Below, one piece after another: positions 19,350 through 62,600 of a DNA stretch of 64,000 nucleotides. The position numbers were made by a program, and so were the translations under genes. Within the stretch, counting starts at the first letter, position 1. Each line of letters opens with the position of its first letter. The stretch comes from Bugula neritina. Taxonomy: Eukaryota; Animalia; Bryozoa. A model generated the notes under the pieces. That model was given only the letters and a program-made list of their open reading frames with translations. It made no database searches and was not told the origin of the DNA. The stretch covers positions 22,043,319 through 22,107,318 of the forward strand of contig OZ037768.1 of assembly GCA_964035545.1 (NCBI GenBank), given 5' to 3'.

Positions 19350-22300
19350 ATGTACTTTTGTCAGCGAGTTGCTTCTCTAATAAAAAGATCTCCTCTCCCT
19401 AAACATGTCTTGCCATGTATTACATCACAAGGTAATTTAATCTATTTGGGATAGACTTCAGGCGTTTTCATAATCTTCAGAGCCTTCAGTTAGAGTACAC
19501 AAGCTATTTTATAGAAGCACATTTAGTTATAATTTGCATTGTTTTTCATTTATGTGATGCATTTTTATTGCATTTCAATTTTACTTATTTACTTTATTTA
19601 TTGTTTTGCGTTTCAAATTCATTTATTTATGTAGTTGTATCAACTTTAGGGTACTGTGACACAAGTAATAATGGGAACGTTGCAGCGTCTCGTAAACAGC
19701 TGCCGTACCATTCCCGAGTCGTCGTATGCGGTGGAGGAATAGTCGGCTGTTCTATTGCATATCACTTGACCATGATGGGAGAGGACGATGTGGTGGTCCT
19801 GGAAAAGAATCGGTGATAACTTTTGTATTTATACTTGGAGCTTCAGAATAAATGTTGAATAATGATTGAAATGAGATGATTACCAGTTGTATTCTGGCCT
19901 AAATTATGGCTGAAATATTCAGTGCATAATTTAAAGGCTGCTGTTGTAATTTCTTTGAGTTTCACCACTACTTTGAGTTATGTTCTTTAATGATTTTATT
20001 TGTGTATTTTATTTATTTAAATTTGTTATATGCATATACTGTAAAGTGCATGCTGTAAAATATAATTTTTTGCACACATCTACGATATAGCCTATTTTAT
20101 ACAGTATACATTTTTATACATATCTATCATAAATTGTATATTGTGGAGTATAATTTTGTTATGCATATCTACAGTATATTGTATAACTTGGTTTGGCTAT
20201 ACATAATGTAATATAGTGTGTATTTTACAGCATAATTTTGTTATACACATTTACCATATAGCGTATATTGTGCAGTATGATTCTACTATACATCTCTACG
20301 GTATAGTGTATATTCTACTGTATAATTTTATAGGATTGGAGAAGGTGCCACTAGCTATTCTGCTGGAATTGTGGGACAACTGAAAAGTACTGCATTCGAG
20401 ACTCGTGCTATACAATACACCATTGAGTTATACAAATCGCTCAGTGAAGAACATGGCTTAAGTTAGTTATATGTTATTTAATTTTTACGTCAACACCCTG
20501 TACTAACATCCTATGGGCAGGCAAAGCATGGAAAATGTAGGAACAATTGTATTCATGATAGTTTGAGACTCACATAGTCTCACAGAATGTTACTCACTTT
20601 AATATTATATGCTGACTGAGTTAAAGTTATATTTAAAACATAGCTCTTAATTAATGCAATATTGAAATAGAAACATTATACAGTTGCTTCCTGCAGTTAA
20701 ATACTGTCTGAAAGTTATAAAATGCCACTTGCTCTAATGTATCTGCAGCATTTCTGTGTCCGCAGCAATAAGTAAGTATAATCTATAGAAACGCTCTGTC
20801 TTACAGACTGGGTGAAATCTGGAGCTCTTTTTCTCGCCAGAACGCCAGATCGTCTGCATAAGCTAGAGAGACACCATCAAACTGCCAGGTGGGTGTACTA
20901 TCAGTAGCTTGTTGTAGCGAAGAATATTCTCATAAGATTTGAAAATCTTCTTTATTACTAGAAGCTGGAGATGATTATATTTTGGAGTTGTGTACCCTAA
21001 CAATGTTAAGTTTATACAGTTTCTTCCTGTATCCTTGGCTATTGCAGTGCCTCTCTTTAGATTGAGTCTAAAACTCTGCTGTTAGTTTTTGAAAAATTTG
21101 GTGTTTTTCATGTTGGTTTTGTTTTTTAATGATATTTTTTCCACGAGCATGAATTTACAGCAGCATAATCTAGATGGAATTTAAAAGAAAACTTTTTGCT
21201 AACTCTAATATATATCTGGTTAATTTGTTACACTTATATGATATTGATAAAAAAACTGACCAAATGTTGCATTATTAGTGCTGTAGTTACACTATATGCA
21301 GGTATATTAGTAGTGTAGTTACACTATATGCAGGTATATTAGTGCTGTAGTTATACTATATGCAGGTATATTAGTGCTGTAGTTATACTATATGCAGGTA
21401 TATTAGTACTGTAGTTATACTATATGCAGGTATATTAGTACTGTAGTTATACTATATGCAGGTATTTTAGTACTGTAGTTATACTATATGCAGGTATATT
21501 AGTACTGTAGTTATACTATATGCAGGTATATTAGTACTGTAGTTATACTATATGCAGGTATATTAGTACTGTAGTTATACTGTATGCAGGTATATTAGTG
21601 CTGTAGTTATACTATATGCAGGTATATTAGTGCTGTAGTTATACTATATGCAGGTATATTAGTGCTGTAGTTATACTATATGCAGGTATATTAGTACTGT
21701 AGTTATACTATATGCAGGTATATTAGTACTGTAGTTATACTATATGCAGGTATTTTAGTACTGTAGTTATACTATATGCAGGTATATTAGTACTGTAGTT
21801 ATACTATATGCAGGTATATTAGTACTGTAGTTATACTATATGCAGGTATATTAGTACTGTAGTTATACTGTATGCAGGTATATTAGTGCTGTAGTTATAC
21901 TATATGCAGGTATATTAGTACTGTAGTTATACTATATGCAGGTATATTAGTGCTGTAGTTATACTATATGCAGGTATATTAGTGCTGTAGTTATACTATA
22001 TGCAGGTATATTAGTACTGTAGTTATACTATATGCAGGTATATTAGTGCTGTAGTTATACTATATGCAGGTATATTAGTGCTGTAGTTATACTATATGCA
22101 GGTATATTAGTGCTGTAGTTATACTATATGCAGGTATATTAGTACTGTAGTTATACTATATGCAGGTATATTAGTGCTGTAGTTATACTATATGCAGGTA
22201 TATTAGTGCTGTAGTTATACTATATGCAGGTATATTAGTACTGTAGTTATACTATATGCAGGTATATTAGTACTGTAGTTATACTATATGCAGGTATATT

Positions 22301-25300
22301 AGTACTGTAGTTATACTATATGCAGGTATATTAGTGCTGTAGTTATACTATATGCAGGTATATTAGTACTGTAGTTATACTATATGCAGGTATATTAGTG
22401 CTGTAGTTATACTATATGCAGGTATATTAGTGCTGTAGTTATACTATATGCAGGTATATTAGTACTGTAGTTATACTATATGCAGGTATATTAGTGCTGT
22501 AGTTATACTATATGCAGGTATATTAGTGCTGTAGTTATACTATATGCAGGTATATTAGTACTGTAGTTATACTATATGCAGGTATATTAGTGCTGTAGTT
22601 ATACTATATGCAGGTATATTAGTGCTGTAGTTATACTATATGCAGGTATATTAGTACTGTAGTTATACTATATGCAGGTATATTAGTACTGTAGTTATAC
22701 TATATGCAGGTATATTAGTACTGTAGTTATACTATATGCAGGTATATTAGTGCTGTAGTTATACTATATGCAGGTATATTAGTGCTGTAGTTATACTGTA
22801 TGCAGGTATATTAGTACTGTAGTTATATTATATGCAGGTATATTGGTACTGTAGTTATACTGTATGCAGGTATATTAGTAGTGTAGTTATACTATATGCA
22901 GGTATATTAGTACTGTAGTTATACTGTATGCAGGTATATTAGTAGTGTAGTTATACTATATGCAGGTAAATTAGTACTGTAGTTATACTATATGCAGGTA
23001 TATTAGTGCTGTAGTTATACTGTATACAGGTATATTAGTAGTGTAGTTATACTATATGCAGGTAAATTAGTACTGTAGTTATACTATATGCAGGTATATT
23101 AGTGCTGTAGTTATACTGTATACAGGTATATTAGTGCTGTAGTTATACTATATGCAGGTATATTAGTACTGTAGTTATACTATATGCAGGTATATTAGTA
23201 GTGTAGTTATACTATATGCAGGTATATTAGTGCTGTAGTTATACTATATGCAGGTATATTAGTACTGTAGTTATACTATATGCAGGTATATTAGTGCTGT
23301 AGTTATACTGTATACAGGTATATTAGTGCTGTAGTTATACTATATGCAGGTATATTAGTACTGTAGTTATACTATATGCAGGTATATTAGTACTGTAGTT
23401 ATACTATATGCAGGTATATTAGTGCTGTAGTTATACTGTATACAGGTATATTAGTGCTGTGGTTATACTGTATGCAGGTATATTGGTACTGTAGTTATAC
23501 TATATGCAGGTATATTGGTACTGAAACACAGCTATTGTGCAAAGATGAAATGGCTGAGAAGTATCCATATATTGGTGGTGATGACTTGCTTGGAAGTCTG
23601 TGGATACCCGAAGACATCATTGTCCATTCTCAACAAATTACTCCCCTACTCAGGAAACTTGCCGAACAAAATGGTACGTCTACATTGAGATCTCTACTAT
23701 CTGCATTGAGCTCTCTACTATCTACACTGAGCTCTCTACTCTCTAAGCTGTGCATTGTTGAAGCTCTCTCTAGTCTTCTAATCCAGGTGTGAAACTTGTA
23801 ATAGTGACAGTGTTGTTCATCAAGAGCTGTGTAGTGGAGCATGGAGCATGCATGAGCTTTTACACTCTACAAGGTTATTCTTGCCATTGCAGGTGCCACA
23901 TTTATTGAGGATTGCTCTTTACAGTCGGTGCACACGGACAAACATAGGCGTGTGGTCACGTCACTCGACACTTCTGAAGGAGAAATCAAGTGTGACTATT
24001 TCATCAACGCGGCTGGTCAGGTCGGTATTTTGATAGGCTGACTTATCGCTGCTTTCAGAGTATCCAAGTAACTTTGCAAACTTTAACCTGCAACTCAACG
24101 CATCTCAAATTTATTTCACAGTGGGCACGGATGGTTGGGAAGCTGAGTACGCCCCGTGTTAGAGTTCCTATACATTCTGTGGAACACTACTTTATGCTAG
24201 CACAGCCACAGGATGTTATAGATGAGAACATGCCGGGTGAGATAATTTGTTTTCTTGCAGCAAAGTCTCGTATTTTTACTCAAGGGAGATACTTGTAATA
24301 ACTCAAGAGAGAGACTTGTAATGACTCAAGAGAGACTTGTAATGACTCAAGAGAGAGACTTGTAATGACTCAAGAGAGAGACTTGTAATGACTCAAGAGA
24401 GAGACTTATAGCAGTCATTTGAGCTGTCTGTCTGTTTGTAGTTATCAGAGATTACGACAATCACTGCTACTTCCGGATGTGGGGAAACTCCATCATGGCC
24501 GGTGCATTTGAAGCTGTGGCTAAGCCTATATTTCACGACGGAGTTCCTGAGACATTTAATTGTGCCAAGGATAGACTGAAAGAAGACTGGGACCAGCTAC
24601 GTAAGTTCTTACAGACACTAGAGTAAGTTATCAGCAGACGAGGTTCAAGTGTAAGTCAGCCTATGTCACGGACTTCAAGTTAGTTTATTCTCAAGTATTG
24701 ATTGGTTGGTGGATTCTTCAGTTACAAATGAAAAGATGTGAGTTTGAGAGAAAATAACTTCTGTAGTTTTCAATTTTCTTAAGCCAATAAAATGTTGCTT
24801 GTAAAAGAAATTTGAGTTAATATTATTAATGTTTTTATTATATGCCATTCTACGAAATCTATTTACACATTCATCGAAATAGTTGAGAAGGAAGCAACTT
24901 TTTTCAGCATTCATTACTTGTTTTAGCTACACGTCATATCTGTAGAAAATTGGTGTTTACTTCTTACTTTGTTTGACCAAAGCTGGTGAATAGTTTTGTG
25001 CTTTGCATGTTCCAGAGTTCACCCTGGACAAGGTTGTAAGCTCCATACCACAGCTGTCGTCTGCTTGTATAAAGGACGTGGTTACCGGCACCGAGGCCTT
25101 CTCTCCTGACAGACACTGGATTCTTGGAGAGGCACCAGAGGTGGGCTAAAATGGTCAGAACTCAAATATTCTGGTTGTTATGTTTTCTGCTGTAAAGTGT
25201 ACTTGTCAATAAAACTACAAATTGCTGTTTTTTGTTTAAAAAGATCTTATTTAAAACTTGATTTGCCTGAATGACTGATCTTACAACCAGTGACTTCTGT

Positions 25301-28300
25301 CAGCTCTACTAAAGTTTTCACATTTTGTATTATCAGCAAGCTTCAGCTCTACTGATTTGTGCAGTGTAACAAGCAGTTTGATTCTATGATATGAATGTTC
25401 GATGACGGCATTATTCTAATGTAAATAAGCTTATAAGACCCTGCTTTTGAAAATTCTTTTATTTACATTATAAAATCCATCTTTCAGAACCCAGAGTTTC
25501 CCATGATACAAAAGTGTGGTAAAATTAAAATGGCGTCCAAGTTCAAAATAGTTTGTTTCTAATTTCTGCTGTCACAATGAACTCTGGCATAAAATGATTA
25601 AATTAGGTGTTCTACAGCTCTGAGTATTTCATTAGCGGCTCACAACTCTGCTTATTGTTTTCAATCTTCTCAAAGTTAAGAAATCCGAAGCCACATTTGG
25701 TATTGCATTATAATGGCTCCATGGAGATGAAACACAATTCAGATGTGAGTGATTTTCATAAACACAACTCCAAAACTTAACAAGTTTATCAAGTCTTAAG
25801 TTCCAGAGATGGCATCATAGCAAAGATGATTTTACACAACATTAATTTCCTAAATTTATATAATAATTTTAAGCTACTAAACGCCAAGGTTAGATAGTGT
25901 TATATTATTTATTTATTTTTTATATGATCAAAGTGAAAGCATTTAGTGTTTCTGACCAAGTAAGACAGACAGGCAGACCTAATGTATACTATGTATCATA
26001 ATGTCAAGCAGTCTTAGTGACAGTTCTAAACCACAGCTACGCTGGCTCCAGTGGGGGTGGTAGCCTCGCCCACTTCTTCTATCTTCTCGGTGTCTGGGCT
26101 AGTCTTCTTCAGATTGCTGTCACTCAAATTCTGTGGCGGTGGGTTCATCGTGCATGGCACCACTGGCACTTGTAGTTTTTTGATGTTCACGCTCAAGGTT
26201 GCCGGGGTCTTTTTCAAAGGTATGGTTTTCTTGGACACAAGAACTGATGGTTTACAAGCAGTCTTTGCTTTGAAAGTTGATCTCGTCACTCTAGTAGTTG
26301 ACCGAGCTACTCTAGCTCTTTTTCTCGAAGTCGGCTTGGTTTCTTCATTCCTTGCTCCTTCTAATTTTGCTGGTGCACTTGACTTTCTCTTGGTGGCTGT
26401 TTTACGCTGGGTTAGTTGGCGGGGTTTTCTCGCGGATTTTACTTTTGCACTCTTCTTTACGGTGCTGGTTGATTTAGCAGTTGTGGCGGTCACCTTTGTC
26501 GACTTAATTGCCGATTTTGTTGCCGATTTTAAAGCTTTGCCATTTGTATTTTTGGTTCTCTTGGCCACTGCAGTAGTTGAAATGGTGTTCTTCACTTTAG
26601 CAGTGTTTGATTTTCTACTCTTTGAAGTAGAACCTGTCGCTTTGCCCTTTTTTTTGCTGGTAGTTCTTGGCTTTGCCACTTTTACTGCCGCAGTCTTCTT
26701 TTCATCTACCCTTTTGGTTTTCGCTGATTTTGCTTTTGGTGATGGGTGTGGTTTGTAGCTGATCTCCGTGTAATCGCCATAGGAAGTGGCAATACTTGAG
26801 CAGCTGGTGGCATCACTGTAGTCATACTTGTCATAGTAAGTACACGCTGTCGTGTTGGTATAGGAGGAGTCACTGGAACTGCTGGCACTGTCCCCTAAAT
26901 ATCAACCAATTAATAGAGGTTACCACAGGCTAATGTCTTGCCTAGTGAAGAGTGAATTTATTTCAAGATTTGTAAAACTCTTGCTGAATGAAAGTTTTCT
27001 GCGTTCTTACCCAAATACTCAGTTCTGGCAGAGGAGGTGCTAGGTGACCTTGAACTGCTGTAATGCCTGTGACCGCGCGATCTTTTCGGCGTTCTGCTCC
27101 TGTACGATGTTCTTGAACTGGAAGGTTCGCGAGATTGTAGTTGCTTTCTTGATACGACAACATTTTCTGTTGCTGATGCTATGCTTGTTCTCCGATCAGC
27201 CTCATTACCATACCTGTAAATTCAATTTTGACTAGAATCAAGTGGATAAATATTTAATTTATACTGTTCGGCTATACTTAAGTCAGTAACTTAATTTTAA
27301 GTAATAAAAGCTTGAGTATGTAGGTTGCTTGTAGTTTGAGCTAGAACTTAGAATTAAAATGTTTTACCGTTTCTTTTGTTCCGATGTCATTGCTCTCCAA
27401 TGTGAAGCAGCCTTCTCATCAAATTCCTTTTTCTCCAACTTCCTCCTGCCATCTCTTTCTCTCTTCCGTTTATAGAGCTGTGCAAACAGCTTGTAGCCCT
27501 CGCTCTCATGGGATGCAACCATTTTGGGTAAGAAAAGTTGTAACTCAATGACTCCGGTGTTCTGAATCTGCTATGAATTATTTTGATTGTTTAGTTATGG
27601 CTTCAGCATCATCTCATTGTCAATGATTGGTTGATTATTTTGCTAGAAATATTTTAGCCATTTGTGCAAAATTCATCTTCAGCATTTCACAGAAATATTA
27701 TAATATTCATAGTTGGGCCAAATACTTGAACATTTCTTATAACCAGTATATTTTCAAGGTTTTAGACCTAAGCATTCTATATGTATTCCGTATTATTATT
27801 CATTGCCATTAAATTTTATCAAATAATAAAAAGTATCCAGAAATTGTCTGAAAACTGAAAAGTAATGATAAACTACAATTTAGCACACACAATTGTACGT
27901 AGATAATAATATATGCATGTATATTTGCTTACATGTTTCTAATAAAACACACATTTGAATATGGGAATTTGAAATGTAGTATAATGCAGCAATTTGAAAA
28001 CAAAAAAGATACGTTTATTACACTTTCAAGCATTTTATCATATAACTTTTTCAACTGAACATTTTAGATGAAAAAATACTGGTTTTTTAGACTTTTGTGT
28101 AAAACCTAGATAATACTCAGGTAATACTTGAGTCTTACTCAAGTAATACTCACGTAATACTCAGGTAATACGTAAGTAATACTTGAGTAATGCTCAGGTA
28201 ACACTCAAGTGATTTTAGATCAAATTTATGACAAAATAATATTTGCATTCAAAATTTTTTGCCCTAATAAAATACTGCTTTTTATGCCCAAGCTGTAGTA

Positions 28301-31300
28301 CATGAATCTGACAGATAACCCCTAGTGTAGTTTATTGTATTTATACACTAAAAAACCTGAGCAAACTCTTTTTAAATAAAAAACTTTCTCTGCTTTAATT
28401 GACAGACAAGCTCTCTAAATATAATTAATAGATTGCCCTTGACATCTATAATATGCCTTACTTTTGACCTTGACATTTATGCTATTTGCTCCGCATTTTA
28501 GTTGAAGAATTATTTTCTGGCAGCTGGATTTTGTGGGGCCGGAACAGCTGCTTCTGGTGGAATCGGCAAGAAAATAGCTGAGCTGGTGCTGGCTGATGAC
28601 ACCAATTCATTCAACGGGAAAGTTGATGTGAAACGATTCGTGGATCTTCATAACAATATCAAGTACTTGAGAGATCGTGTCAAGGAAGTTGTTGGTAATA
28701 TATACTAGTAGTACTAGTACTCTACTACTACTAGTACTAGTATTACTACTACTACTATTACTACTACTACTGCTACTACTACTGCTGCTACTACTACTAT
28801 TACTACTACTACAATGTATGTCTGTTATTTAGGGTTTGACTACGGTGCAGAAGGCGCTAGTCCAGATCGGCAGTACGATTCAGCTCGCACGTTGCGAGTC
28901 TCTCCTCTTCACACGAGAGCTGTTGAACTGGATGCGGAGTTTGGCGAGACTGTGGGATACGAGAGAGTTATGTACTTCCTCTCTAATTCTCCAGATATCA
29001 CGCACGGTAGGCGGGCAGTTTATCTTGTCATATGTATCACTGTGATAGGGAGCAGCCGTGGTGTAGTGGTTAGAGCACTGGTCTAGTAAACACAAGGTCA
29101 ATGGTTTGAATCCCATTTAAGGCCATTGATGATGTAGGAAGAGCATCCAGTCATAGTTGCTCCTTTGTCACAATGGGAAACAAGTCCTTAGCCCGCTTAA
29201 AAAATCTCCTCTATGAGGAGTTCTCACAGGAATAGTGACTATAAACCCACGAGAGTTTTTTATGTATCACTGTGATCTAATCACATTATATTTTTTCCTC
29301 ATGCAGACGAAAGTCTTAACAGAAGTAAAACGAGATACGGACAGCCCAAGTACTTTGACATCGTCAAAGCCGAGTACAAGGCGTGTCGCGAGGCTGTCGC
29401 TCTCATCGACATGTCTTCTTTCTCCAAAGTCGAGATTCGGGTAACGTTTCTTGTTTCCTGTTCGTCTGCTTCTCAGTAGAGCTGGTAGTCGTAGGCCGAC
29501 AGTTGCAGAATATTCAAGTGATAAGTAGATGTGCTCTATTAAGGATTGCAGACTACGTGTTAATAATAGCAGCTTTATAGTATAAAATAGAATTTAGTGA
29601 TCACTTGTGTATAAAAATATACTGAAGATATTTTTTGATAAAAAAGACAACTCAAGTAACCACGCAGTACTAAAATATTTGTGTAACAAGGGTAGACAAT
29701 TTCAACTTTTTTTCTTTAAGCACTTATATTTTAGTAAATTAGTTTTATAATACTCATATATTTGGACAGATTGGCAAGTTGTTGTTATGAGCTTCTAGTT
29801 TCCATGACTACTACTGTTACTAATACTCAGACTAATAGTTTTGATGTGTGAATCTGGTATTAGAATTCTTACTCAAGTTGTAATGATGCGTGTGAGAAGC
29901 TGTTACTCTGTCCAAATTTAGTGCTTTTAATAATTTGCATTCTTGTGTTGGGCTCAAAGACAATAAGATATGTTTTGTATTAAAACAGTCGGATAACACG
30001 GAGGAGTTGGTCGACTTCCTGCAATACGTCTGCGCCAACGATGTCAACAAACCAGCCGGAACTGTCATTCACACTGGCATGCTCAACCACAACGGCACGT
30101 ATGAAAACGATTGCAGTCTATTCCGGGAGAGTGAAAATAGGTAAATCCAGGAAAATTACCTAAAATATTACCCCACACTGTTTATAAGTTTACTCCTCAC
30201 TGTGTTCAGGTTTACCCCTCACATATTTTCAAAATTAGCATGACTGACTCATGTCAGGCTAAGAGATTTAAATTCAATGTAGAAAGTATTACAGTTTTGC
30301 ATACAAAAGCTATCACTACACCCCCTTCCCCCTGTAATTTCTAGTATACACCCCCTTCCCCTTTCCTCCTGTAATTTCTAGTATACACCCCCTTCCTCCT
30401 GTAATTTCTAGTATACACCCCCTTCCCCCTGTAATTTCTAGTATACACCCCCTTCCTCCTGTAATTTCTAGTATACACCCCCTTCCCCCTGTAATTTCTA
30501 GTATACTCCCAAGTATGTGGCTGATACACAACCCACTATATATGCTCTATCAATACACAGGTACTGCAGTGTCAGTCATGTTGTGTGTAATACACTGTGT
30601 TATGTATAGTTCTACAGTTATTTTCATTTCTCCAAACTTGCAGGAAGAAAAACATTGAAGCAGCCAGAAAATGTTATATAATGTTATTACAAGGTGTTGT
30701 AATATGTTTCAGTCAACTATATGTTTGTGTTGAAATACAATTATACATAACTTTAGCAGCCGTAACATATCTCACCAAACACCTTACATTTTGCCCTAGC
30801 TACTCTAATCACATGAACAGTGAATCCTTGTTTGTACATTTCCAACTTTTCAATCAACTTTATATTCAATTCAAAAAAAGAAAATTTGTTGCTACTGGAA
30901 AGACTTACCACTTTTCATTGACTGGTGGCTAACAAATTCGTAGCTTTTAGAATTTTATGAGCTGTAATTTTTAAATATAAATAGATTATTTCTAGTTAAT
31001 TAAAACTGAGGAAATTGAGTTTTTATTGTTTAGATGAAAATGAGTGAAATTTAGAAATAAACATTTTAGTTTCCCAGTGGCCTTTTAGTAGAAAAAGCAA
31101 CTCCAATCCACAAAATTACAGCTCAGAGTTTAGACTAAGAGTTTGTGTATACCTTGAGTAGGTAGTACTGTTACTGAGTGACTAGTACTGCTACTGAGTG
31201 ACTAGTACTGCTACTGAGTGACTAGTACTGTTACTGAGTGACTAGTACTGTTACTGAGTGACTAGTACTGTTACTGAGTGAGTAGTACTGTTACTGAGTG

Positions 31301-34300
31301 ACTAGTACTGCTACTGAGTGACTAGTACTGCTACTGAGTGACTAGTACTGCTACTGAGTGACTAGTACTGCTACTGAGTGACTAGTACTGCTACTGAGTA
31401 ACTAGTACTGCTACTGAGTGACTAGTACTGCTACTGAGTGACTAGTAGTCTTACTGAGTGAATAGTACTATTACTGAGTGACTAGTACTGCTACTGAGTG
31501 ACTAGTACTGCTACTGAGTGACTAGTAGTCTTACTGAGTGAATAGTACTATTACTGAGTGACTAGTACTCACACTGAGTGAGTAGTACTCTTACTAACGG
31601 ATCACATTGCAGGTACCTCTCAGTGTCTCTACCCCAGCAGCAAACCCAGACACTCTGGTGGCTGAACAAACAGCTGCCACAAGGTTCCTCCATCCAGATC
31701 AGTGACATCACGTCCATGTACACAGTCATCAATGTCATTGGACCAAAAGCTAGAGAGCTCATTGGTGAGCTCACTGATGTTTCGCTTAAAATAGCCGACT
31801 TCCCTCAGATGTCCGGCAAGGTGGGTTATGTTTGTTTTGAAAGAAGGTTTGAGATATGAGAAAGGTAAGGAGGTGGTGTAAGACAGTAAAGGTAAGTTGG
31901 ATGAGGTGAGAAGCTCAGAGTAATGCGGGAGAGGTGAGAGTAGGGGAGCTTAAGGCAAGCCTTTACGTATTGGAAGGGTTGAGCTATAAATAAAGTTTGG
32001 CTGTTGGCTTTTTTTATAGGGTAAGTGCTTTAAAAGCTGTGCCTGAGTTCTAATGAATAATTGTAGTAAAGGAAGTTGCCCAACTATTCATTGAAACGCC
32101 TTAAGGTGCAAGTTTGCAATAAATAACATGCATGCTCAAAAAATATATATTGGAGTTTAATAGGTCATCTAGTATATTTCACTCTGCGTTATATTTGGCT
32201 TGTTTAAAGGAAAACGTGTCGAATAACAGAAAAAGTGTGTTGAAGCCCAAAATCAGGTTCAAAAGTACTGGTTGGATTTGCTTGAAACTAGCCAAGCTCA
32301 AAAATTGTCATAAGAATGCAAAATCTATGTTAATAATTTGGCAGCGATAGAAAAAATATATCACAGGAAAACCGATTAATAGTGAATTTACCATGATTGG
32401 AAAAAAGGAATTGCATTTTCTGAAAATTAAAAATAATTCTGGTGCTAAATGGTCACATGTATGCAGTTGTCAGTATATATTACAATGCACCATAATAAAT
32501 ATAAAAATTGCGCTTTATTTTAGTTTGTAATTTAAATGAACATCTTATGGTTTAGAGTTTAGTAGCAGTAGGTGAATAACCAGAGTAATATTTAATGTTT
32601 AGGAAGATATTTGTTTGCTAACTAACACTGACCATCTCCTGACTCTGAATATATTGTAGCTTAAACTATGAGAATAAGAAACATTATTTTCTGTTGCATA
32701 AGCAAAGCGAGAAGTGTAAACATTTATCTGTTTACTAAATGCAGTGAGTTTTAGCTGTTGATTAATGTTACATTATGGTTGATTAGTCGAAACTATTTCA
32801 ATGGAAGCTAATCTAGATAAGAGTTATGGTACCAGATTGAAGATAAACAGAAGATATATTTGATGTATCATAACTTATCTAAGAGTCAATCATAAAAATG
32901 TCAACACTAGATATGCCAAGTAAAGTCAACAGTTGAGTTATCCCAGATGTGTTAGAGAAATGTCAAAAGTGGAGTTGTAATAAAAAATTTGGCTTAAAAT
33001 GCTTGTGAAAACTAAAGCTTCAAAGTAATTTCGTTTGGAAATTAGATTTCTATAAGGAAATTAGTATTGAAGCTATCAGACCTACAGGATTAGAAGATAG
33101 TTGAATATTAATAATTTTATGTCATCTTGTAATCCCTTTAGTCTCACACTTTCATATTTCTTTTGCTCTTGGTGCTTTCTAAAAGTCAGATTTGTTAAAA
33201 AGGGCTAGAATAAGGTGTGTTGCTGTAAACTTTATATTTTTTGTATTTTTTTATTTTCTTCATGTTTTAATTTGATTTAGCCATAGCACATCAAAGTTCA
33301 TAGAAAGAAAGTTGTACAATTTTTTTCTCTACTGAAATATAGAAAGGAGTTTCCAGTTTTATCACCTCAATAGAGATGACGATGTTCTCCATTCAAAGGC
33401 TTCCAAAAAGTTTCATTCTCCATCTATTCGAAATAAAAAGCCAAAAAGCAAAAATTCTCACTAGTAACAATTTGTTTATATGCATAGGAAATAACTTGAT
33501 TGTGCATGTATATAAGCTTCGTGCCTTCTGCGACATTTACTATTCCACTGAGAGAACCTTCGTTTCCTGCCAATTTTCACAGTGAAACAAAACTATTTGT
33601 TTTGGATTTTTATCACTGTTGCACAAGTTTGGTGTATAGGTCACGACCCCTGGATAAGTCTTGACCGAAATAGAAAGCTAATCAATAAAGCATTAAAACT
33701 CTCTTCTCCAAACAAGTTTCTCTGATTCACCAGATTGATAAATAATTCTACATTCAAGAGTTGCAGCTGATCAGGTTACTATCAATAAAATACAGCTAGT
33801 TGTGAGCTCTGTAATTTAAAGCCTTTCCTTATTTGTAATCATTTTCAATCTGTACATGGTAAAATGACCTGTCAACACACAATGAATGTAAATACTGGAA
33901 TCTCTGATGATAAACACACTCTGTTATGAACACACCACACATTAAAATCTAATAAATAAATGAAAGTTAATTAGTCTCCAATATCTTATTTAAGCAATTC
34001 CTATTTAAATGTATGCACTGGTAAATAAATAAAGGCAAGTCAGTTTGACAATTCTTCTTTTGCTACATTTTTATTCTAGAACACAGGCTTTTCTCAATTT
34101 CTCCATTACTGCACCTACCTCTCAAAAATTTAAAAATAAATTCACCAACTTTTACAAAACTATATAAAGCTTTGAAATGCACTGCAGTTTTCGGTGCCTT
34201 TAGCTTCCTTGGCTTTTAATATTTATTTCTCAAATTTAAATTCCATACTATATTATATTATATTAACTGAATCCTATAGAAACTAGTATTACAATAAAAC

Positions 34301-59637: not shown

Positions 59638-62600
59638 CTATCTCGCGCTCTTGGTCTTTTTGATACCTCTCACGACATTCTTTTGATTGGCTAGAGTTCC
59701 CTTCTTGTTTCTGGAGGTCTAGAAGCAGAATTCAAATTAATAACACGTAATCATATTTCATAATTTCATTAGCACACCAATTGTGCTAAAATGCTCCGCA
59801 GAAAAACAGCTCAGCCAACTCAACCATAAATGACAAAACTCAACCAAACAGTACCCCTTATGCTAGCCACTGCTTCGCAACTAAAGAACTACCCAGCTTG
59901 ACTCCTGAGAAAATAGGAGCTTTAAAATTTCCAACTACAAGCAGTTTTCTAATAAGGTTCAACTTTGACCTGACAGATGAATAATATTCAGCCAATCTAA
60001 AGCGAGACAAGCAATGCGTAACAACAGATACCTTTGAGGGCGTCTTCTTGCGGAGTCTTTTGTTAAGCTTTGACTTCTTGGTAACATTGCCATCCTTGAG
60101 TACTTTATATATTCTAACCAGCCAGTGTTCAGTTGTGTAAGCTTCCTCCAGGTGCTGCAACTTGAAGTTCTTGTGACCAATCTCTACGTTACGAGTTCTG
60201 TCGTATCCGGGTGGAGTTCGGTGGTCCAACTGCAAACAATCGTAGACACTGTATATATGCTAGTAGGTACTGTATATATGCTAGTAGATACTGTATATAT
60301 GCTAGTAGACACTGTATATATGCTAGTAGACACTGTATATATGCTAGTAGACACTGTATATATGCTAGTAGACACTGTATATATGCTAGTAGACACTGTA
60401 TATATGCTAGTAGACACTGTATATATGCTAGTAGACACTGTATATATGCTAGTAGGTACTGTACATATGCTAGTAGACACTGTATATATGCTAGTAGGTA
60501 CTGTATATATGCTAGTAGACACTGTATATATGCTAGTAGGTACTGTATATATGTTAGTAGACACTGTATATATGCTATTAGACACTGTATATATGCTAGT
60601 AGGTACTGTATATATGCTAGTAGACACTGTACATATGCTAGTAGACGCTGTATATATGCTAGTAGGTACTGTACATATGCTAGTAGACACTGTATATATG
60701 CTAGTAGGTACTGTATATATGCTAGTAGACACTGTATATATGCTAGTAGGTACTGTATATATGTTAGTAGACACTGTATATATGCTATTAGATACTGTAT
60801 ATATGTTAGTAGGTACTGTATATATGCTAGTAGATACTGTATATATGCTAGTAGACACTGTATATATGCTAGTAGGTACTGTATATATGCTAGTAGACAC
60901 TGTATATATGCTAGTAGACACTGTATATATGCTAGTAGATACTGTATATATGCTAGTAGGTACTGTATATATGCTAGTAGGCACTGTATATATGCTAGTA
61001 GGTACTGTATATATGCTAGTAGACACTGTATATATGCTAGTAGGTACTGTATATATGCTAGTAGTACTGTATATATGCTAGTAGGTACTGTATATATGCT
61101 AGTAGACACTGTATATATGCTAGTAGATACTGTATATATGCTAGTAGACACTGTATATATGCTAGTAGACACTGTATATATGTTAGTAGACACTGTATAT
61201 ATGCTAGTAGGTACTGTATATATGCTAGTAGACACAGTATAGATGCTAGTAGACACTCACCTGTAGCTCACCAAACCGGTAGTAACACAGCTTATACATC
61301 AGACAGTTTAGCAGAGTCTTAGAGCCAGCTGAGTCTACTCTGAACTCTCCATTAGGGGTGAAGTAGTCACTCTCCTACAAACCACAAACAAATCCCATTA
61401 AAAGAACTGAGGCTATGTGTTTGTGTTTGGCTAAAAAACGTTTTTAAATAAATGCAAATGAAACAAAATTGAAGCTCTTCCAATGCATTGAATGACCTAA
61501 AAAGTAGAAAATTCATTTATGTGCTGTGTGAAGATAGGCAGGGGTTATCTGTACATGGCAGTGTTGCATGGTGGCTTTGTTGTTAATTGTTACACAGGCT
61601 TTTAGAGAAAAAGCTATTTAAAGCTTTCAGATAAAAACTGAATGCTTTATGTACATACTGTTTGACTCTCTATGACTCAACCTTGCAACACATTGTATGC
61701 TCAATAAAGTTTATTCACATAATACTACAAACAGGTCTCAGTACAATAGATGGATGAAGACTAACCAAATACCAGTTAGAAAATATTGCTGTTACTAAAG
61801 TCTCGGACTCTCACCTTGATGTCCTGGGGGTGTTCCCCCTCCGCAATGCGCACCATCCACAGGAACTTGTTGATGTCGTCACCCGAGTAACCAATCACGC
61901 CGCCGAATATAACCAGTACGTAGTCAACTCCCAGCATCTTCATGATGTCATAGGCAGCGGTTTCATTGGACGACATGGCTTTACCCACCTGCATACATAA
62001 CATACAGATGGTAAGAGAAATAGAGAGGAACGAGCAGAAACATGCATACCAGATAGAGAGATAGATAGACATAAAATTATACCAACAAGACAACTTCAAC
62101 TCAAATAATATTGCCTGTTGAATTAAAATTATATTTAATGTAATAATTACTGCTGCAAAAGATTAAAGTTCCTATATTTCTACAGAACTTGCCTGGCAAA
62201 ACTTTTAAGAAACACACAACTGAGTTCACTGCTATAAATGTACAGTACAGACACGTACCAGAGCAATGTGACTGTTGTTCCAAGTGTTATTATCAACGAA
62301 TGTAGTCTTGTTCCCCATACCAGCTATCTGGTACCCATAATCCCACCAAGACATTACCGTCGCCTCGTCGTCGGTGTTCTGTCTCAGCCAATAATACGCC
62401 TCACGAAAATCATCCAATATCATACGAGATCTAGAACAGTGCAAATTACAATACAATGGTGGCTGCAATACATAATATAATATAATGACACTATCAATGA
62501 ATCATAAGGTATGCCATAATAATTATATTACAGAGAATTAGTAAAAATATTCTACACTGCATGAATATAAAATCATTTAACTGGTCAAGTTAAATTTAAA

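Follow-up and report, generated by a model that had tools for sequence, protein, structure and literature searches.

HMGB1 combines a basic DNA-binding part and an acidic tract within one chain, and its acidic tail masks its own high-mobility-group (HMG) boxes. HMG boxes are also found in SSRP1, in UBF and in a set of sperm nuclear basic proteins (SNBPs) of Drosophila. The Drosophila HMG-box SNBPs (Mst35Ba/Bb, Tpl94D, Prtl99C and CG30056) are testis-specific proteins shorter than 200 aa with an isoelectric point (pI) above 10, they often evolve fast and exist in several copies, and the gene CG30056 sits inside an intron of another, housekeeping or developmental, gene (PMC9917458). In Nasonia, which lacks sex chromosomes, the SNBPs are single-copy and non-dynamic (PMC13148410). 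Analysis of a stretch of 64,000 nucleotides from the bryozoan Bugula neritina (contig OZ037768.1, positions 22,043,319 to 22,107,318; hereafter the window, in whose coordinates positions are given) revealed a three-exon gene that lies within an intron of a PDPR-like host gene, on the opposite strand, and encodes a protein of 408 aa with an HMG box at its N-terminus. The gene is annotated already yet uncharacterised, and its products form a new, lineage-restricted HMG-box family. We consider it probable that this single-copy nested gene, of an apparently bryozoan-only family, encodes a nuclear chromatin architectural protein composed of the HMG box and a disordered tail.

To characterize the protein, we worked with the window exons one at a time or with two orthologues from the databases, P0001 and P0002. 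We accept that residues ~7-72 constitute a divergent HMG box, of the HMGB/SSRP1/UBF kind and not of the SOX/TCF kind. Exon 1 alone matched the Pfam family HMG_box_2 with an E of 0.0016, and residues 1-80 of P0001, the GenBank protein of B. neritina, scored 21.0 bits against a gathering score of 22.4 bits (E 5.7e-4), with three of the seven family members matching. Alignment by hhalign of the family profile to a profile of eight canonical HMG boxes from the same genome gave a probability of 88.7% and an E of 2.5e-6, the 51 aligned columns being in canonical register. The seven-member alignment (A1) shows that M1, G9, L12, F13, L16, Y17, R21 and W42 are invariant, so that the aromatic/hydrophobic core of the HMG box (L12, F13, Y17 and W42) is conserved; Y or F at position 10 and the Tyr opening exon 2 are likewise kept in all members. 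The aromatic core, together with the signature W..L[ST]..EK..Y..EA, is shared with HMGB1 box A, SSRP1 and UBF.

The predicted structure points in the same direction. The AlphaFold2 (AF2) model places helices at residues 4-23, 31-43 and 47-79, with a predicted local distance difference test score (pLDDT) above 90 over residues 11-60, and the AF2 model of the orthologue from Watersipora shows the same three helices, i.e. the predicted L-shaped three-helix fold of HMGB1 box A, SSRP1 and UBF. Comparison of the predicted model with 48,161 representatives of the PDB by VIA-align returned HMG boxes at all of ranks 1-24, the best being SSRP1 (Z 8.2, root-mean-square deviation 2.7 A over 68/68 residues), with HMGB1 box A at Z 7.8 and the UBF boxes at Z 6.3-7.3. 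Foldseek against the PDB gave no match at E <= 0.001, though nearly every top row was an HMG box; the fold was settled with VIA-align, which is independent of Foldseek. The ESM Atlas holds its own, independent model, which matches HMG clusters at template modelling (TM) scores of 0.57-0.74, while the feature search of the same resource gave scores of 0.75-0.83, under the meaningful level. A first-pass annotation of the window had proposed a degenerate HMG box and suggested Pfam or structure prediction on the N-terminus as a check. The Pfam near-match, the profile-profile match and the predicted fold bear the proposal out: the check yields a predicted three-helix HMG fold, with a Pfam score slightly under the cut-off.

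The gene model is read from the minus strand of the window (27522-27368, 27213-27011 and 26894-26026). Exon 1 (155 nt, ATG at 27520-27522) carries residues 1-51 and two bases of codon 52, codes for HMG helix 1, helix 2 and the beginning of helix 3, and ends at the donor AAACG/GTAAAA (the slash marks the junction). It is followed by intron 1 (27214-27367; GT..AG, phase 2) and by exon 2 (203 nt, flanked by ACAG/ and /GTAAGA), which holds the remainder of helix 3 (~27153-27212), a linker, an Arg/Ser tract and a TSSARTEYL motif. Intron 2 (26895-27010; GT..AG, phase 1) separates exon 2 from the coding part of exon 3 (869 nt), which starts after TTTAG/, encodes an acidic block, a Lys-rich tail and an acidic C-terminal tip and ends with the stop codon TAG at 26026-28. 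The three exons add up to 409 codons including the stop. P0001, which is deposited as 'hypothetical protein EB796_004895 [Bugula neritina]' (404 aa), has both junctions identical to those of the window model, and the RefSeq protein of Watersipora subatra uses the same junctions. The open frame of exon 3, 291 codons, is the longest non-repeat open frame of the window (34% GC), and the GTG-started, Lys-rich ORF (open reading frame) of 217 aa at 26026-26679 (minus strand) is its distal end. The first-pass annotation was therefore right in calling a three-exon, 408-aa antisense gene, whose frame, GT/AG sites and junctions match EB796_004895, and in taking the 217-aa ORF for the mere end of a larger gene. 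It had also described the gene as hidden, which is not so, since two public annotation sets already model the locus. P0001 has no precomputed Pfam domain, and the HMG box went unrecognised in public annotation.

To determine whether the locus evolves as coding sequence, we compared the window with the P0001 locus (L003) in the B. neritina assembly GCA_010799875.2. P0001, the sole protein returned by the exon 3 search, is 86% identical over exon 3. At the nucleotide level the exons are 92-96% and the introns 93-95% identical, suggesting that the window comes from a close yet distinct lineage of the B. neritina complex. The ratio of non-synonymous to synonymous substitution rates (dN/dS, by the Nei-Gojobori method) was 0.14, 0.08 and 0.36 for exons 1, 2 and 3, respectively, and 0.28 in total at a dS of 0.17 (synonymous versus non-synonymous, Fisher p 7e-8). 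Substitutions at codon positions 1, 2 and 3 numbered 12, 28 and 45 (chi-square p 7e-5). The sole coding indel, in exon 3, is of 12 nt and in frame; the intron indels are of 10, 1, 23 and 3 nt, and none of the three in intron 1 (10, 1 and 23 nt) is divisible by 3. The four splice sites are all kept in the B. neritina assembly. The 3' flank is ~97% identical over ~110 nt up to the poly(A) signal AATAAA (25912-25917, minus strand, ~110 nt past the stop codon) and the alignment collapses just beyond it, which is the pattern expected of a 3' untranslated region. To judge from these comparisons, the substitution pattern is that of coding sequence, although the exons are no more similar than the introns.

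These data bear on the possibility that gene predictors modelled a non-functional ORF, arisen by chance or decaying. It would account for an exon identity that is not above the intron identity, and the protein collections searched gave no transcript-derived protein for the gene. However, a dN/dS of 0.28 with a p of 7e-8, a frame that stays open through all 408 codons in two lineages, orthologues in Watersipora (44% identity) and in four further taxa that share the exon structure and the motifs, and an HMG domain that is confidently predicted to fold all speak against it. We regard a non-gene as extremely improbable; by the conservation data, this explanation is effectively refuted. The 216-Mb genome holds one copy of the gene, and no paralogue of exon 1 or exon 3 was found elsewhere in it. 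A transposon or viral origin was considered and rejected given the single copy and the conserved synteny. The window (25026-28522) and L003 differ by ~5-8% in aligned non-coding DNA and by many indels, and from the alignment the two assemblies probably derive from separate cryptic lineages within the B. neritina complex, or else from strongly diverged haplotypes.

An exhaustive phmmer search with P0001 against 1.84 billion cluster representatives returned 8 proteins, all with the same exon-wise architecture. The full-length relative is XP_067934889.1 of the cheilostome W. subatra (316 aa, 44% identical, E 8e-36), which carries the automatic name 'serine/arginine-rich splicing factor 8-like', whereas the remaining ones are single-exon ORFs called on contigs of genomic DNA (SRA, ENA and Tara samples). 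In contigs of these relatives tblastn recovered the same three exons, with exon 2 homologues at five other loci. The family appears, from the sequences matched, to be confined to bryozoans; the eight matches, all of them apparently bryozoan, agree with the lineage restriction that had been suggested at first pass. In two of the contigs, both of one relative (L006:6393-6616 and L007:282-507, from SRR25569789 and SRR25569777), ~225 nt seem to interrupt exon 3 at the boundary of the acidic block and the basic tail, whether as an additional intron or through a break of the frame.

The nested position is conserved as well. The host exon that precedes the nested gene (25006-25143, plus strand) aligned by tblastn to the Watersipora locus (L004) with 63% identity (E 1e-17), and the one that follows it (28502-28705, plus strand) gives a Pfam FAO_M match at 28622-28708 and adjoins the nested gene also in L004, L006 and L008. 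Further host exons lie on both sides, with the DAO start exon at 19715-19810 and GCV_T exons from ~30010. The host has the architecture DAO/FAO_M/GCV_T/GCV_T_C and is PDPR-like. Several such genes exist in the genome, so we keep the designation 'PDPR-like', a DMGDH/SARDH paralogue also being conceivable. We observed two more DAO/FAO_M/GCV_T genes as a head-to-head inverted pair on the same chromosome (G000:C4:8530045-8564863) and another one on C3 at 3.66 Mb. In the window, as in the B. neritina assembly, W. subatra and the species of L006 and L008, the orthologous host intron holds the gene on its opposite strand. Given that this intron is shared by Bugula and Watersipora, we concluded that the nesting is older than the split of the two. 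The nested antisense placement claimed at first pass is confirmed by the flanking plus-strand host exons, and the comparison with relatives proposed alongside it (tblastn, synteny and dN/dS) found the same host intron in five bryozoan lineages and the dN/dS of 0.28 given above. The locus is a clean case of a nested antisense gene whose host intron is common to Bugula and Watersipora, and it lends itself to the study of coexistence between a host gene and the gene nested in it.

Past the HMG box, ~335 residues are predicted to be disordered. AF2 orders only residues 8-63 in the Watersipora orthologue, and the Atlas model of P0001 has a mean pLDDT of 0.42. Whole orthologues of 316-404 aa have 23-24% Lys+Arg and a pI of 10.5-10.7, and the charge is distributed in distinct segments. 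The product of exon 2 (67 aa, pI 11.4, 34% Ser+Thr) contains the Arg/Ser tract (27039-27122, minus strand; 28 aa) with the conserved core Y-R-S-R-[ST]-P, the RSRSP.R core being kept in L005, L006, L008 and L010, and it ends in the motif [ST]-S-S-A-R-T-E-Y-L (27012-27038, minus strand), which is near-identical in six of six exon 2 homologues. The acidic Ser/Tyr/Asp block encoded by exon 3 (26764-26868, minus strand; SSYT.T..TYYD...SDATSCSSIA.SY..D.TE in alignment A2) is the best conserved part outside the HMG box, and the acidic segment, of 46 aa, has a pI of 4.05. It is followed by the Lys/Ala/Thr/Ser-rich basic tail (26170-26754, minus strand; 195 aa, net charge +55, Lys+Arg 30.8%, Ser+Thr 28%), which differs between genera in length and sequence. 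Two short C-terminal motifs are conserved in A2 on the minus strand, K-K-x-I-P-L-K-K-T-P-A-[ST]-L-S-V-N (26182-26235) and P-P-[RP]-Q-x-x-S-D-x-x-L-K (26098-26142); the latter lies inside the acidic C-terminal tip (26029-26169, minus strand; 47 aa, pI 4.4), and the last residue is a hydrophobic -V in all members. The full-length alignment (A3) was not used as a profile; in it MAFFT had mis-registered the exon fragments. The Arg/Ser, acidic, Lys-rich and acidic-tip segments that the first-pass annotation had listed are all present in the exon-wise translations, which contain the motifs it quoted. Its mention of SPK/TP motifs was overstated, exon 3 having only four S/T-P sites and one SPK. We also noted that S-A-S-S-A-R-T-E-Y-L at the end of exon 2 (27012-27038) resembles S-S-Y-T-D-T-A-S-T-Y-Y-D at the start of the acidic block (26833-26868), the two having been superposed by MAFFT; this likeness may reflect an internal duplication of a Ser/Thr-Tyr motif.

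The conservation of short motifs within an otherwise variable tail suggests specific partners rather than bulk packaging, i.e. a disordered protein with probable phospho-regulation and not a simple counter-ion for bulk DNA. The mechanism that we propose is that of an architectural protein of nuclear chromatin. Its HMG box would recognise or bend DNA, be it nucleosomal or not, irrespective of sequence, while electrostatic DNA binding and compaction would be added by the Lys-rich tail, and the conserved C-terminal motifs would dock partners. By analogy with the acidic tail of HMGB1, the acidic block and the Arg/Ser tract, once phosphorylated, could mask the basic parts.

A number of observations weigh against this proposal. 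The masking step, with its autoinhibition and phospho-regulation, is drawn by analogy, and the structure models were built from single sequences. The match to HMG_box_2 is just under the gathering score, and sequence searches of the PDB were not significant, phmmer giving none and the family profile only E 0.36-0.75 (SOX17). The basic P-K-R-P strand is absent: whereas canonical boxes of the same genome carry [PV]-K-R-P, the family consensus before helix 1 is M-A-x-S-x-D-S-x-G, neutral or acidic. Loss of this strand may reduce the affinity for DNA, and it is possible that the box binds DNA weakly or binds protein instead.

The last point, together with the Arg/Ser tract, would also fit a different protein, an SR-related scaffold of nuclear speckles or the nucleolus, in which the HMG-like domain would bind protein or RNA and the Arg/Ser and Ser-rich acidic tracts would drive phospho-dependent condensates in a Nopp140- or UBF-like manner. 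Such a scaffold would be in keeping with the conserved Arg/Ser core, the alternation of acidic-Ser and Lys-rich segments, the box lacking its basic N-terminal strand and the UBF boxes among the top structural matches (Z 6.3-7.3), and RefSeq has named the Watersipora orthologue 'SRSF8-like'. Like SR proteins, the bryozoan protein has a short Arg/Ser tract with an R-S-R-S-P core; unlike them, it has no RRM, since neither an RRM nor any other RNA-binding domain was matched in Pfam at E up to 10 with the window exons or P0001, and its tract is just 28 aa long. RefSeq assigned its name automatically from a best hit; the name carries no evidence and is a misnomer. We consider an SR-related scaffold rather improbable.

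When compared with HMGB-type proteins, the chromatin protein that we favor resembles HMGB1 in carrying a basic, putatively DNA-binding part and an acidic tract within one chain. It differs in having one box, at the extreme N-terminus, which is without the basic P-K-R-P strand and whose similarity falls under the Pfam cut-off. Its acidic tract is an internal Ser/Tyr/Asp block and not a C-terminal poly-Asp/Glu tail as in HMGB1, its tail of ~200 aa is rich in Lys, Ser and Thr, and the family appears to be bryozoan-restricted. With the C-terminal domain of histone H1 and the protamine-like (PL) proteins it shares an extended disordered tail in which Lys, Ala, Ser and Thr abound and whose net charge is strongly positive. 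Unlike H1 and PL proteins, it has no winged helix, the HMG box being the only predicted folded domain; the linker histone family (PF00538) gave no match at E up to 10 with the window exons or P0001. Furthermore, the tail holds 31% Lys+Arg with an equal share of Ser/Thr and a single S-P-K. The resemblance to H1 and PL proteins is compositional and not homologous.

The first-pass annotation had proposed that the protein is an HMG-box sperm nuclear basic or transition protein of spermatids, evolved independently of that in Drosophila and controlled by SRPK/CDK-type phosphorylation and by the acidic block. The combination of an HMG box with a long basic tail (pI 10.4-10.5) speaks in its favor. The Drosophila SNBPs are HMG-box proteins with a pI above 10, and CG30056 is nested in an intron (PMC9917458); the bryozoan protein likewise has one HMG box and a pI above 10 (10.4-10.7), is lineage-restricted and is encoded by an intron-nested gene. 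The searchable literature describes no bryozoan SNBP. Purifying selection is no bar and is not decisive against a sperm role, because SNBPs of Nasonia are also single-copy and stable (PMC13148410). On the other hand, the sperm role is read from composition, and with its 408 aa (the Watersipora orthologue has 316 aa) the protein exceeds the fly SNBPs, all shorter than 200 aa (PMC9917458). Its gene is single-copy, under purifying selection and conserved in position between Bugula and Watersipora. Lys and Arg make up only 23% overall, Ser/Thr content equals that of Lys/Arg in the tail, and there is one SPK. Pfam Protamine_like (PF06382), like the linker histone family, was not matched at E up to 10 by the window exons or P0001. 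The short motifs common to Bugula and Watersipora suggest specific partners, not bulk packaging. Taken together, the moderate basicity, the length and the purifying selection are no less compatible with a regulated chromatin protein than with a sperm protein. We therefore hold the sperm protein to be unlikely, and marginally more doubtful its elaborated form, in which a slowly evolving, intron-locked sperm packager arose from an HMG-box protein in bryozoans, independently of Drosophila, and in which phosphorylation of the Arg/Ser tract and of the acidic Ser/Tyr block acts as the switch for DNA condensation.

Either way, a domain and a family are now assigned to a protein that public annotation lists as 'hypothetical' for B. 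neritina and misnames 'SRSF8-like' for W. subatra. The gene provides a concrete and cheaply testable candidate for a bryozoan sperm chromatin protein, none being described in the searchable literature. If it proves to be one, HMG-box-based sperm packaging evolved at least twice; if it does not, the gene would still encode a taxon-restricted chromatin protein with an unusual layout that may be regulated by phosphorylation.

Upstream of exon 1, the 8-mer GAAGCCAT (27597-27604, minus strand, -75 to -82 from the ATG) is a candidate core-promoter element. Of six upstream regions that otherwise do not align, four hold an exact copy of it between about -60 and -95, counted from the ATG. A CCAAT box lies at 27626-27630. 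On the plus strand, an ORF of 235 aa (26051-26758) runs antisense to exon 3. We rejected it as a gene; it is an artefact that mirrors the Lys-codon-rich exon 3. A similar antisense ORF had been called as a gene on the Logan contig L006.

Elsewhere in the genome, HMG_box matches on small contigs contain 4-7 in-frame TAA codons each (C21:39724-39927, L021; C316:6145-7059, L022; C105:42614-42817, L027; and C258:20868-22169, L031; all G000 contigs). This suggests that these contigs belong to a contaminant that reads TAA as sense, e.g. a ciliate that lives on the colony, and are not bryozoan pseudogenes.

The window also contains several tandem repeats. A 32-bp unit is repeated 70 times with 96% identity at 21273-23523, in one of the upstream host introns, and two intronic minisatellites lie at 30317-30510 and at 31163-31589, the latter with 21 copies of 20 bp that stop just short of a host exon. 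At 60242-61257, 48 copies of a 21-bp unit are open in several frames on both strands, giving rise to spurious ORFs of 335-358 aa.

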